Shown here: positions 3,875-58,950 of the stretch, in pieces
Numbering within the stretch: the first letter of the stretch is position 1
Layout: every line of letters begins with the position of its first letter
Assembly: GCF_001194135.2 (NCBI RefSeq)
Contig: NC_068986.1
Coordinates: 91,137,382 to 91,201,381, forward strand
DNA length: 64,000 nt
Source of the DNA: Octopus bimaculoides
Lineage: Eukaryota
Direction of reading: 5' to 3'
The notes under the pieces: model-generated
The model's input: the letters and a program-made list of their open reading frames with translations, nothing else
Told to the model about the DNA's origin: nothing
Databases searched by the model: none
Made by a program: the position numbers and the translations under genes

Positions 3875-4312
3875 ATCATCATCATCATCATCGTTTAACG
3901 TCCACTTTCCATGCTAGCATAGGTTGGACGATTTGACTGAGGACTGGCAAGCCAGAAGGCTGCACCAGGCTCCANNNNNNNNNNCGATTTGACTGAGGAC
4001 TGGCAAGCCAGAAGGCTGCACCAGGCTCCAATCTGATCTGGCAGAGTTTCTACAGCTGGATGCCCTTCCCAACGCCAACCACTCCAAGAGTATAGTGGGT
4101 GCTTTTACGTGCCACCAGTACAAGGGCCAGTCACACGGTACTGACAACAGCTTCGCTCAAAAGGTGTTTTTTTACGTGCCACCTGCATGGGAGCCAGTCC
4201 ATCGGCACTGGCAACAATCTTGCTCGAATGATTTTCTAACGTGCCACCAGCACAAGTGCTAGAAGGCGACACTGGTAACGATTATGCTCAAATGGTGCCA
4301 TTTACGGGTCAC
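3875..4312 (-). mobile_element. RTE-tail SINE or LINE 3' end with (GAT)n tail; the same family occurs at 58515-58880 (-), 26960-27190 (+) and 47133-47358 (+)
   Basis: Shared ccaacccatgctagcatggaaagcggacgttaaacgatgatg terminus and acgtgccac subrepeats across copies. Confidence 0.85.
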
Positions 4313-7444: not shown

Positions 7445-7544
7445 CAGCAGCATCTACATTCTCATACTTGCAAGGAGTCAAATGAAATTCATGAAGGCAG
7501 ATTTTGCATAGCCTGATTTGTTTTTTTCCTGTCATTAATCTTCT

Positions 7545-9725: not shown

Positions 9726-9863
9726 GGTGGCTCCATTTAATCAAACAATGCAAGCATTACATCAATTTGAAATACACCGCCGTCTTCGGATACATGCATC
9801 TGAAGATGGCGGTGTATTTCAAATTGATGTAATGCTTGCATTGTTCGATTAAATGGAGTCATC
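9726..9863. repeat. Long near-perfect palindrome (arms of about 68 bp)
   Basis: Symmetric about 9794/9795; few mismatches, mostly transitions. Confidence 0.95.
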
Positions 9864-13195: not shown

Positions 13196-13802
13196 NNNNN
13201 NNNNNNNNNNNNNNNNNNNNNNNNNNNNNNNNNNNNNNNNNNNNNNNNNNNNNNNNNNNNNNNNNNNNNNNNNNNNNNNNNNNNNNNNNNNNNNNNNNNN
13301 NNNNNNNNNNNNNNNNNNNNNNNNNNNNNNNNNNNNNNNNNNNNNNNNNNNNNNNNNNNNNNNNNNNNNNNNNNNNNNNNNNNNNNNNNNNNNNNNNNNN
13401 NNNNNNNNNNNNNNNNNNNNNNNNNNNNNNNNNNNNNNNNNNNNNNNNNNNNNNNNNNNNNNNNNNNNNNNNNNNNNNNNNNNNNNNNNNNNNNNNNNNN
13501 NNNNNNNNNNNNNNNNNNNNNNNNNNNNNNNNNNNNNNNNNNNNNNNNNNNNNNNNNNNNNNNNNNNNNNNNNNNNNNNNNNNNNNNNNNNNNNNNNNNN
13601 NNNNNNNNNNNNNNNNNNNNNNNNNNNNNNNNNNNNNNNNNNNNNNNNNNNNNNNNNNNNNNNNNNNNNNNNNNNNNNNNNNNNNNNNNNNNNNNNNNNN
13701 NNNNNNNNNNNNNNNNNNNNNNNNNNNNNNNNNNNNNNNNNNNNNNNNNNNNNNNNNNNNNNNNNNNNNNNNNNNNNNNNNNNNNNNNNNNNNNNNNNNN
13801 NN
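13196..13802. other. Assembly gap (others at 3975-3984, 25975-25984, 37611-37768, 54402-54566)
   Basis: Runs of N, mostly next to (TA)n tracts. Confidence 1.
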
Positions 13803-25974: not shown

Positions 25975-25987
25975 NNNNNNNNNNATA

Positions 25988-36683: not shown

Positions 36684-36796
36684 TTAACTAGTTCAATATA
36701 AAACTTTGCAACAGTAAAAAAATTAACCTCAATCTTCTATTGAAGATGTACCTAAATATATAGCTAAGAGTTTGTTTCTCTTTCTCAGTTCAGTTG

Positions 36797-36894
36797 TGCA
36801 CATCCAGTATGTACCCAGATTTCAGCATCAGGCACAAACTTACCATTTAAGGTTTTACATTGGTGCCATCATTCAGGTATCAACTGAGTGTGCA
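36797..36894 (-). promoter_or_regulatory. SECIS element (type 2) in the SELENON 3' UTR
   Basis: Minus strand reads ...UACCUGA AUGAU GGCACCAAUGU AAAA CCUUAAAUGGU AAGUUUGUGCC UGAUG CUGAAA UCUGGGUA...: AUGA/UGA core, GGCAC/GUGCC helix II, apical AA 11-12 nt above the core, and a lower helix extending to UGCACA/UGUGCA. Confidence 0.92.
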
Positions 36895-37059
36895 TAACTA
36901 AATGTGTGCAGGTTTGGAAGAAATTTAACAAGTCATATCACAGAACTTGCTTTAGTTCTTAGCTGAATTCTATATAAAAATATATATTTCATATAATTAA
37001 AATAATAATGATATAAACATAACATAAATTTGTTAATCTGCAATTCCCGACTTTACAGG

Positions 37060-37150: not shown

Positions 37151-37867
37151 CTAGAGATAAAGAAAGAAAGATAAATTACTTAATAGTTATGTTTCCATAC
37201 AATTTCCTCATAGTTAAAAAATTACAATATAATGTAAATGAATCACAAACTGTTAATGAATTTAAATACATACATATATATGTAAAGATGGATGTATAAT
37301 GACTGAATTACAATTTCCTCACAGAATTTACTACATACACTCACACACACATTATTATTTGAAAGATTTTGTCCTTCTGTTGTCAAGAACTTGGTTGAGT
37401 ACATCAAAGACGTTTTGAGCTAAACATTTTAAGCAACAAATAGCAGTTCTGATTTCCATGGTTACATCAGATAGCAGTATAAAAGAAATTTTTCTTGAAA
37501 TATCTAACTGCAACCTAAAATCTATATTATCACTAAAACTACATCTCAAAGACTTTTTTCATTGTTAGTTAATAAGACCCCCATTGCATATTTATTTTAT
37601 TTTACAATAGNNNNNNNNNNNNNNNNNNNNNNNNNNNNNNNNNNNNNNNNNNNNNNNNNNNNNNNNNNNNNNNNNNNNNNNNNNNNNNNNNNNNNNNNNN
37701 NNNNNNNNNNNNNNNNNNNNNNNNNNNNNNNNNNNNNNNNNNNNNNNNNNNNNNNNNNNNNNNNNNNNAAGGGCTTCATTTGTAAGGAATTTTGTTTGTT
37801 TTTTTTTTGCTTCGCTTTCTCTCTGACATTTTATCTTTTGCTGACATTCATCAGTGAAAGATATACC

Positions 37868-46515: not shown

Positions 46516-47357
46516 ATGCTAGTTCTACAGTTCGTGCGTTGATAGTTCAAAGAGTTCAAAGTTTACAGTTAGAGTTAGCATGTTGGCTTGTTGGTTCTTA
46601 AAAGATTGTTATGTTCCATATGGTTACTACCATTTGTTTCAATTATATTGTTATCATATTGTTGATGTGTATTCATTTATCCATAAGGATACAACAATTA
46701 CACATCCAGCATGTTCTACTCATATTTGCTCTTCACATGACATTTGATGTGAACATTGTACTTTAAAATATATATCCACTACGATTAGACATTATTTGTT
46801 ATCATCCTCATTTTACATCAATTTTTTTACTGCTAGCATGAGTTAGATGAATATCACAGCACTTCACAAACGTTCATCAACTAGCAGTAAAAGAAACAAC
46901 ACAAAACCAGCACTTTTTTAATAGGGCAGGGGATACCCTTTCTATTACAAACCACTTTATGACATGCGATGCATTTTATCACACCACCAGCATTAGAAAA
47001 GTCATCTGTATCAGCACTAAACAGATCTCTCTACACTGTCAATGGTTTATTATCAGTTTTTGTCTTCCAAGACAGTTTGTCTTCTGTTAACTTGATCTTT
47101 TAAGTCTTTATGTACACCCTACTATGTTATTTCAGCAACAAACGTGGTCGATGCCAGCCCCTCTGGCTCCTGTACCGGTGGCATATAAAAAGCATACACT
47201 ACACTCTCAGAGTGGTTGACGTTAGGAAGGGCATCCAGCTGCAGAAACACTGCCAGATCAGATTGGAGCCTGGTGCAGCCATCTGGCTTCCCAGACCTGA
47301 GTCGAGCTGTCCAACCCATACCAGATGGAAAATGGTCGTTAAACGATGATGATGATG

Positions 47358-48434
47358 AATCTAATCAAATTACAAGTTTAGAGACAATGAGAGCACTATG
47401 TACTAAAGAAGTCAAATTATTGGTGCTCATATGGCAGGTGCTAGCATAATGAAAACAGCCGAAATATTTGTTGTATCAAGAAGTACTGTCTTGAAAGTAA
47501 TGACAGCCTTTGAGAAAGAGGGAAAAACCTCCTCATCGAAACAAAACTCTGGAAGGAAACCAGAACTTTCAGATAGGGACTGTCGGACTCTGACACAAAT
47601 TGTTAGAAAGGATCACAAAAGTACAGCTCCCAAAATTACTGCAGATCTTAATGACCACCTCAAGAACACAGTTTCCACAAAAACTGTTTGTTGGGAGCTG
47701 CACAAAGCTGGATTTCATGGGAGGGCTGTAATCAGAAAACCATTACTTTCAAGAACAAATGTTGCAAAGCATTTATAGCGGAGTAAAAACCTACAGAATT
47801 GGTCCCTAAAGCAGTAGAAAAATATTATTTTCTCGGACGAGTCATCCTTTACCTTATTTCCGACCACTGGCCGAGTATATGTGTGGAGACAGCCAAAAGA
47901 AGCATTTGACCCAGACTGCCTTCTTCCAACTGTTAAACATGGAGGAGGATCTGTGATGACCGGGGTGGGGGGGGCTATATCTTGGGAATCTGCTGGTTCA
48001 ACGGTTTCTCTTCATGGCAGAATCAACAGTCAAGACTATTTAAGCATTTTATCTGATCAAATTCATCTTATGGTTGCAGAACTGTTTCCAGAGGGAAACA
48101 CAGTCTTTCAGGATGATAATGCACCAATTCACACAGCTAAATGGTATAAGGAACATTCTAGTGAAGTTGAACATCTGGCTACCACAGTCCCCAGATCTCA
48201 ATATTATTGAACAAATATGCTGCATTTTAGAACAACAAGTAAGGAGTAGATATCCTCCACCATCATCACCACAAGAACTGGAGACTATTTTAGCTGAAGA
48301 ATGGACAAAAATTCCTTTGTAAACAATTTAAACTTTGTACAAGTCCATCATAGAATTCAAGCTGTAATTACTGCCAAAGGCAGTCCTACCCCATATTAAA
48401 ATAAATTTGTTTGAAATTTTAAGGTATTTCCATT
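47358..48434 (+). mobile_element. Decayed Tc1-family (DD34E-type) transposase in SELENON intron 3
   Basis: HTH region (MAGAS...SRSTV...GRKPELSDRD...KPLLS), IFSDES, TVKHGGGSVM, FQDDNAPIH and WLPQSPDLNIIE; several stops and frameshifts. Confidence 0.93.
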
Positions 48435-54401: not shown

Positions 54402-54566
54402 NNNNNNNNNNNNNNNNNNNNNNNNNNNNNNNNNNNNNNNNNNNNNNNNNNNNNNNNNNNNNNNNNNNNNNNNNNNNNNNNNNNNNNNNNNNNNNNNNNN
54501 NNNNNNNNNNNNNNNNNNNNNNNNNNNNNNNNNNNNNNNNNNNNNNNNNNNNNNNNNNNNNNNNNN

Positions 54567-56179: not shown

Positions 56180-56806
56180 AGGACAGCTGTGTAAAGAAGT
56201 GCTGATCTCTAACTGTGGAAGAAATCTGTAGTAGAGGTAGACACGTGACGAGGTGGTGAAGCATGATCTTTGAACTTTGGGCCTCACAGAGGCAATGACT
56301 AGTGACCGAAACCTTTAGTGATATGCTCTGCTTGAGGAGACCTGTCAAGCCATGGGAAATCATAGTCCTGGCTGATGCTGGTGTCACGTAACTGGCAACT
56401 GTGCCAGTGGATCATAATTGGATCTTTTGAGTGTTGGGTTACATGGAGGCAAATTAGCAGATGCTGGTGGTACATGAAAAACTCCTTTCAAGTGTTGTGC
56501 CTTAAGGAGGCAACGACTGAGACCTTTGGCATTATGTTGTGCTTGAGAAGAAGACCCATCAAGCTAAGTGAAATTGCAGTCATGGCAGATACCAGTGTCG
56601 CACAAATGGCACCCATGCTGGCGGCACATAAAAGCACCCGTTAAACTCTCAGAGTGATTGGCATTAGGAAGAACATCCAGCCATATAAACCATGCCAAAT
56701 CAGACTAGAGTCTGGTGCAGCCCCTCAGCTTGCCAGCCCTGGTCAAATAGTCCAACCCATGCTAGCGTGGACAGTGGATGCTAAATGATGATGATGATGA
56801 TGATGA
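56180..56806 (+). mobile_element. RTE LINE 3' end with a duplicated ORF-terminal segment and the same 3' tail as the (GAT)n SINEs
   Basis: DEVVKHDL..LGLTEAMTSDR-like peptide followed by the family tail ccaacccatgctagc...gatgatgat. Confidence 0.75.
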
Positions 56807-58175: not shown

Positions 58176-58950
58176 CTAAAGTTTGAATTTAAATCACAGA
58201 AATCAGTTTTGCCTTGTTTTCATAGGCTCCATAAAATAAGTGTAATTCAATCGATTTAATCCATCAACCAGTTTAACACCACTAAACGGATTTCCACCTG
58301 ATTGCAAATATTTGGTTCAGGGCTCCAGCAAGTCAAAGGATAATCTAAGAGGTATAGTTCTTCATCCCCTCCCTCCAGAAGTCTTGGAAGTGGATAAATG
58401 CCACAAAATATTCATGGCTGCTACATGTTCATTTCCTCTGAATAAACCAAAAAATATTCTTTTTTTGAAGTATTAAGGCGAATTTAATCAGCCATGATTC
58501 CTTTGAAATATTTAATCATCATCATCGTTTAACGTCCGCTTTCCATGCTAGCATGGGTTGGACGATTTGAATGAGGGTCGGTGAAACCAGATGGCTACAC
58601 CAGGCTCCAATCTGATCTGGCAGAGTTTCTACAGCTGGATGCCCTTCCTAACACCAACCACTCCAAGAGTGTAGTGGGTGCTTTTACGTGCCACTGGCAC
58701 GAGGGCTAGTCAGGCAACGGCCACACTCAAAATGGTGTTTTTTACGTGTCACCTGCACAGGAGCCAGTCCAGCGGCACTGGAAACAGCCTCACTAGAATG
58801 TTTTTTCACATGCCACCGGCACAAGTGCCAGTAAGGCGACACTGGTAACGATCACACTCAAATGGTGCTATTTACATGATGCTTTTTAGGTAGCACTAGC
58901 AAGGTCACCAAATAATTTGCAAGGCAAGATCCTTCAACTGATCATCTTGT

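Follow-up and report, generated by a model that had tools for sequence, protein, structure and literature searches.

A very probable SECIS element on a long lower stem in the SELENON orthologue of Octopus bimaculoides

A hairpin in the genome of Octopus bimaculoides raises the question of whether it directs the reading of a UGA codon as selenocysteine (Sec), of which gene it would be a part, and why its lower stem is so long. The analysed sequence is a 64,000-nt stretch of contig NC_068986.1, hereafter the window, to which all coordinates refer unless stated otherwise. An initial annotation had read positions 36797-36894 as a type-2 SECIS of SELENON on an unusually long lower stem, a hairpin of about 98 nt whose core was said to match the human one and whose duplex might be a substrate of ADAR.

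Stop-to-stop open reading frames and tblastn with related proteins identify the host gene as an eight-exon SELENON orthologue on the minus strand, the features of which are presented in Table 1. The hydrophobic segment WLFWFSIIVAVVAIL, encoded near the N-terminus by exon 1, corresponds to the transmembrane segment of SELENON. It is accompanied, as in SELENON, by an EF-hand loop, DLDEDGYLSLNEF, which matches four Pfam EF-hand models with E-values of 2e-4 to 5e-3, all under the Pfam cut-offs. The SelenoN core itself yielded no match in Pfam or PDB sequence searches. When the part of the protein preceding the UGA was used in a database search, 269 proteins were returned, and those that carry a name are called selenoprotein N or SELENON. 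The part following the UGA, which ends in FQNPTS...RPNL, is 92% identical to a "hypothetical protein" of O. vulgaris and 77% identical to one of Argonauta hians. The assignment of the hairpin to SELENON is thus upheld by the minus-strand exons, by the UGA in the SCUG motif and by homologues named selenoprotein N.

In the annotations of O. vulgaris (L001 1-7357) and A. hians (L002 1-6221), SELENON is split at the Sec-UGA into two "hypothetical proteins", with 500 and 479 aa, respectively, upstream of the UGA, and 103 and 104 aa downstream. Splitting at the UGA is the usual fate of selenoprotein genes under automatic annotation.

The in-frame UGA of the octopus gene, placed in the SCUG redox motif of SELENON, precedes the SECIS core by about 550 nt in the spliced mRNA. 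It is followed by a Sec redefinition element (SRE), a hairpin with a folding energy of -32.7 kcal/mol and a z-score of -3.7. Across eight SELENON sequences from different animals, the outer stem of the SRE is invariant and the inner stem covaries. Both the UGA and the SRE are kept in O. vulgaris and A. hians.

Table 1. Features of the SELENON locus and of its SECIS hairpin, in window coordinates.
Feature	Position	Strand	Remarks
Exon 1	60809 to about 60270	minus	start ATG, transmembrane segment, EF-hand; bounds approximate
Exon 2	about 53967-53854	minus	bounds approximate
Exon 3	about 52770-52407	minus	bounds approximate
Exon 4	about 45025-44873	minus	bounds approximate
Exon 5	about 43767-43513	minus	bounds approximate
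Exon 6, Sec-containing	41978-41769	minus	SCUG motif
In-frame UGA (selenocysteine codon)	41876-41874	minus	...LDDQSC-U-GSGRTL, SCUG redox motif
SRE hairpin	41867-41829	minus	begins 6 nt past the UGA; outer stem GGGCGAAC/GUUCGCCC
Exon 7, penultimate coding	40500-40337	minus	DLKKGK...SDFWNIG
Exon 8, last coding	37150-37060	minus	G, then FQNPTSVAYLNFLKTGFQSSLKYRTRPNL and the stop; from translation, AG acceptor and homologues P0002 and P0003
Stop codon TAA	37062-37060	minus	
Complete SECIS hairpin	36902..36789	minus	length 114 nt; 36 standard pairs, of which helix I contributes about 25; contains 36797-36894
Helix I, 5' strand	36902..36875	minus	UUUAGUU.UGCACA.UCAGUUG.UACCU
5' core AUGA	36872-36869	minus	unpaired A, then UGA of the quartet; fourth quartet base U at 36868
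Helix II	36867-36859 and 36839-36831	minus	GGCAC.AAU/GUU.GUGCC; encloses the apical part (36831..36867)
Unpaired AAAA	36856-36853	minus	12 nt after AUGA, the same distance as in the Rfam consensus
Helix III (mini-helix)	36853-36851 and 36844-36842	minus	ACC/GGU, 3 bp
3' core UGAU	36830-36827	minus	GA of the tandem sheared G.A/A.G pairs
Helix I, 3' strand	36816..36789	minus	GGGUACA.ACUGG.UGUGCA.AACUGAA
Two AAUAAA poly(A) signals	36683-36678 and 36674-36669	minus	376 and 385 nt after the stop

Some features of the surrounding sequence are worth recording. The window contains five runs of N, i.e., assembly gaps (3975-3984, 13196-13802, 25975-25984, 37611-37768 and 54402-54566); two of them interrupt SELENON introns, one the first (between exon 1 and exon 2) and the other the last. 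Related ORF fragments (…LDALPNANHSES…) are found at 3993-4259 on the plus strand, and at 47125-47364, 56567-56704 and 58687-58851 on the minus strand. The dispersed repeat that carries them occurs both inside and outside the SELENON introns, and is presumably an interspersed element. At 9740-9848, a near-perfect palindrome gives matches of 58.7 and 56.4 bits to the plant family MIR4374 on its two strands (the cut-off, 105, being far higher); it probably represents a transposon end or an inverted repeat. The many (TA)n and (CA)n microsatellites of the window give rise to spurious matches to miRNA families.

The hairpin is located in the 3'UTR of this gene, whose in-frame UGA occupies the known Sec position. 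It had been placed about 170 nt after the stop, in good agreement with the 165 nt measured between the TAA and position 36894; 187 nt separate the stop from the AUGA of the core. The sequence from the stop to the SECIS contains neither AAUAAA nor AUUAAA. The first poly(A) signals follow 106-115 nt beyond the hairpin, hence the SECIS falls inside the predicted 3'UTR.

A second conserved island, AAGAACUAAAGCAAGUUCUGUGAUAUGA, is present in the same 3'UTR at 36933-36960 of the minus strand, upstream of the SECIS. It consists of a 6-bp hairpin, AGAACU/AGUUCU, followed by CUGUGAUAU, and hardly differs in A. hians. In the decapod-like L006 and L010 transcripts, too, the 9-mer CUGUGAUAU is found no more than about 90 nt after the stop. 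The island may be a protein-binding site; its interpretation as a second K-turn or SECIS was rejected, given the pairing attempted by hand does not fit.

All motifs listed in the initial annotation (i.e., the core, helix II, the AAAA, the mini-helix and the three lower-stem segments) are found between 36894 and 36797, read on the minus strand. The RNA from 36894 to 36797 is UGCACACUCAGUUGAUACCUGA-AUGAU-GGCACCAAU-GU-AAAA-CC-UUAAAU-GG-UAAGUUUGUGCC-UGAUG-CUGAAAUCUGGGUACAUACUGGAUGUGCA, in which the segment between the GG of the mini-helix and UGAUG, UAAGUUUGUGCC, reads UAA GUUUGUGCC. The eukaryotic SECIS consensus comprises a non-Watson-Crick quartet, UGAN/KGAW, with an invariant UGA...GA and an unpaired A or G before it (PMC2647825). 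Both the sequence and the Rfam alignment place the octopus hairpin within this consensus. Helix II is expected to span about 11-16 bp above the quartet and to start with a Watson-Crick pair, with a G in position 1 and a Y opposite. In the octopus it begins with a G-C pair directly above the quartet and comprises eight standard pairs and one C.U mismatch, which a G.A and a U-A extend to 11 positions; it thus has the expected form, and includes one compensatory change. The unpaired A residues of the apical part conform to the AAR of the consensus. Helix III is intact in the window and in O. vulgaris; in A. hians, one of its pairs is lost and another is a wobble. Hence, the type-2 label fits the window but is marginal, since the 3-bp helix III of this octopus is not fully maintained in Argonauta.

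The minimum free energy (MFE) fold of the 98 nt obtained with RNAfold is the structure that had been described in the initial annotation. It presents an energy of -29.6 kcal/mol, against -20.4 ± 3.2 kcal/mol for shuffled sequences, which corresponds to a z-score of -2.9; none of 200 shuffles was equally stable. When more of the flanks is folded, seven extra pairs, UUUAGUU/AACUGAA, prolong the stem to 36902..36789, and the 136-nt stretch 36915..36780, with the hairpin inside, presents an MFE of -37.1 kcal/mol and a z-score of -3.3. The pairing behind the original length of about 98 nt therefore holds, although the true extent is longer. Below the internal loop, helix I has 25 pairs and is 96% paired across the three octopod species compared below.

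Searching both strands of the window with Rfam at E-values of up to 10 produced a single match to SECIS_1 (RF00031), at 36881..36818 of the minus strand, with 26.6 bits. Corrected for 4227 families, this match has an E-value of 0.61 over the window and of 0.0076 in the local 800 nt; a single-family E-value would be about four thousand times smaller. The 26.6 bits fall short of the SECIS_1 gathering score of 35, for which reason a default Rfam scan is empty. Other SELENON SECIS elements score similarly: two from invertebrates obtain 24.9 and 30.6 bits, and one from a bat obtains 35.6 bits. Given the two invertebrate elements are also below the threshold, the Rfam cut-off misses some genuine ones. 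The motifs alone, on the other hand, are weak evidence, as a loose motif-plus-pairing scan that required [AG]UGA, an AA at the right distance and five of six pairs above the core returned 62 matches on one strand of the window.

O. vulgaris (L001) and A. hians (L002) possess an orthologous hairpin, located 182 nt and 170 nt downstream of the stop, respectively. Compared with A. hians, the hairpin is 79% identical and free of gaps; the UTR is 59% identical before it and 51% identical in the 120 nt after it, both with many gaps. For O. vulgaris, the identity is 96% in the hairpin, and 82% and 92% in the UTR before and after it, respectively. The hairpin is thus an island of conservation in both species. 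Both sides of the core (A-UGAU at 36872-36868 and UGAU at 36830-36827) are invariant in the three octopods. In the three-species alignment, 95% of the cells are in standard pairs, against 21-45% when the partners are slid by one to three columns. Two pairs change from C-G to U-A in a compensatory manner, one in helix I and one, in A. hians, in helix II. The statistical support from covariation is weak: with three related species compared and most pairs invariant, the observed value is equalled or exceeded in 59 of 500 shuffles. Hence, the alignment supports the hairpin through conservation and a few compensations, rather than through strong covariation.

In O. vulgaris (L001, about 7513-7535), a (CA)n microsatellite is inserted at the 5' foot of the hairpin, where the window has only GCACACA; the boundary of the hairpin is the point at which conservation resumes. 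The closest non-octopod SELENON transcripts (L006-L011), with 57% protein identity, are probably from decapodiform cephalopods. No convincing SECIS was found in them, L010 and L011 ending too early, and homology is consequently not traceable past Octopoda at the sequence level. The best site in L006 (4293-4359) is at most a weak candidate: it obtains 19.2 bits with Rfam and 17.8 bits with the octopod model, and presents no SECIS fold under constraints. Three further sequences (L003, L004 and L005) contain too little 3'UTR for a SECIS comparison, L005 being cut off within the apparent 5' arm of a SECIS, and Rfam detects no SECIS in L012 or L015.

The length of the lower stem was evaluated by extracting the 45 nt that adjoin the SECIS core on either side, and by comparing the best duplex between the two flanks, obtained by local alignment, with that of 500 dinucleotide shuffles. 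The window yields 27 pairs (z = -3.2), O. vulgaris 25 (z = -2.5) and A. hians 31 (z = -4.3). The same procedure yields 35 pairs (z = -6.6) for the invertebrate transcript L014 (4820-4985), 32 (z = -4.6) for the invertebrate transcript L013 (2740-2900) and 31 (z = -4.7) for a bat genomic locus (L016, 23775-23935). All six of the SELENON SECIS elements examined in this way present a significant flank duplex, with z-scores from -2.5 to -6.6, and the folds of the whole hairpins agree. These values indicate that the long lower stem is real and is found in four independent lineages, three of them outside the cephalopods. The stem is thus as long as had been claimed, and longer, but it is not unusual for SELENON, given the 31-35 bp found in two invertebrates and a bat. 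According to the SECISaln paper, helix 1 of SECIS elements has no defined length range (PMC2647825).

This bears directly on the suggestion that, besides its SECIS role, the long duplex is a cephalopod-specific ADAR substrate whose A-to-I editing tunes selenocysteine insertion. Of the 36 pairs of the hairpin, about 25 belong to a lower stem that is nearly continuous, and the lineage is that of an octopus, its closest loci being those of O. vulgaris and A. hians. Imperfect hairpins of such length are physically within the range that ADAR can edit. However, the SELENON SECIS of the bat, and those of two other invertebrates, have flanking helix I duplexes of equal or greater length, so that a cephalopod-specific ADAR explanation is not needed for the stem, which is moreover broken every 5-7 bp by a bulge, and also by the kink-turn. 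A single published link between ADAR and SELENON was found, and it concerns introns rather than the SECIS: in human muscle, ADAR1 editing of intronic Alu elements controls exon inclusion (PMC9076623). Such an editing role is, on this evidence, improbable.

The remaining alternatives question the SECIS role itself. The score under the Rfam cut-off, and the ease with which loose SECIS-like patterns arise in A+T-rich sequence (the 62 matches mentioned above), would fit a chance SECIS-like hairpin with no recoding role, in which case the true SECIS would lie elsewhere or the gene would no longer use Sec. Yet the hairpin is the sole covariance-model match in the window, it lies in the right UTR and on the right strand with a spacing conserved in three species, it coincides with a conservation island that includes compensatory changes, and the gene retains both the UGA and the SRE, all of which leaves this reading hardly credible. 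The hairpin is also long and fairly regular, with weak matches to Rfam miRNA families nearby (mir-101, 14 bits), and its reverse strand matches the octopod model too, as would suit a primarily different structured RNA such as a pre-miRNA embedded in the 3'UTR or the inverted repeat of a transposon. The reverse-strand match, however, is due to the stem being palindromic. The miRNA matches are at noise level (E-value of about 5), the AUGA/GA/AAA features are confined to the strand of the gene, and the window contains a single copy of the hairpin, which is conserved at the orthologous site of Argonauta. A different structured RNA is thus most unlikely.

Given the consensus features, the sole SECIS_1 match, the position in the 3'UTR, the conservation among octopods and the retention of the UGA and the SRE, the hairpin at 36902..36789 of the minus strand is very probably the functional SECIS of the Octopus SELENON orthologue. 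In the mRNA, AUGA and UGAU would form the kink-turn quartet (U.U, G.A, A.G, U.U). By analogy with the established pathway, SBP2 would bind this quartet, helix II and the unpaired AAA, and would recruit eEFSec with Sec-tRNA(Sec), so that the UGA of exon 6 would be read as selenocysteine in the SCUG redox centre, and not as a stop. The SRE, which is present in the octopus gene, may aid recoding locally, as its human SEPN1 counterpart suggests. Were recoding to fail, the protein would be truncated and, with a stop located 105 nt before an exon junction, the mRNA would become a target of NMD, which is expected because two introns lie downstream of the UGA. NMD after failed recoding is reported for human SELENON.

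The helix I of about 25 bp, a conserved portion of the element, most likely makes the SECIS fold autonomously and remain stable in an A+U-rich 3'UTR, and may also support contacts with SBP2. SBP2 has been shown to contact helix I besides helix II (PMC1874613). A broader reading, according to which a helix I of 25-35 bp (as counted by flank duplexes) is a conserved part of the SECIS characteristic of SELENON across Metazoa, with a function beyond the minimal element, is possible but rather doubtful. On that reading, the additional function would be, e.g., a high recoding strength or the docking of dsRNA-binding proteins, cephalopod ADAR included. The former is reported for human SelN, whose SECIS ranked first in strength among 26 human elements in HEK293 cells (PMC2761289).

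The element is thus an ordinary and well-understood one, newly identified in a species that lacks its annotation; a literature search combining SECIS and octopus returned nothing relevant. Its value lies in marking a selenoprotein gene that automatic annotation breaks, and in the demonstration that the Rfam SECIS cut-off excludes genuine SELENON elements of some invertebrates. What is slightly new is the long, statistically supported lower stem under the SELENON SECIS of four distant lineages. Should this stem be functional, it would refine the notion of the "minimal" SECIS on which reporter and disease-variant work relies; in all other respects, the locus presents textbook recoding machinery.

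In comparison with the Rfam SECIS_1 model, the octopus element shares the AUGAU/UGAU quartet, the G-C pair above it, the AAA 12 nt on, the internal loop, helix I, helix II and a location in the 3'UTR of a UGA-containing mRNA. It differs from the model in its score, 26.6 bits being less than 35, and in its helix I, which has about 25 bp instead of 5 bp.

The mammalian SELENON SECIS belongs to the orthologous gene, is likewise located in the 3'UTR and, in the bat, is enclosed by a long helix I (the 31-pair duplex). The literature assigns the human SelN SECIS to type 1 (PMC3753652 Fig. 2; PMC2761289), whereas the octopus element, with its 3-bp helix III, fits type 2, and the bat core is AUGACGG...CGAUG, against AUGAUGG/UGAUG in the octopus. 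The proposed match to the human SELENON core was therefore not reproduced, and outside the core no sequence homology between the mammalian and octopus elements is detectable. Closer in their core letters are the SELENON SECIS elements of the invertebrate transcripts L013 and L014, in both of which AUGAUGA...UGAUG recurs, and which also share the sub-threshold Rfam scores and the long lower stems. They have no sequence similarity to the octopus element outside the core, and are located about 0.8 kb (L013) and 3.1 kb (L014) after the stop, in comparison with 165 nt in the octopus.

Finally, an SRE has been described for human SelN/SEPN1 (PMC12839072). The octopus gene presents its equivalent, a stable hairpin beginning 6 nt after the UGA, which accompanies the SECIS from within the coding region.
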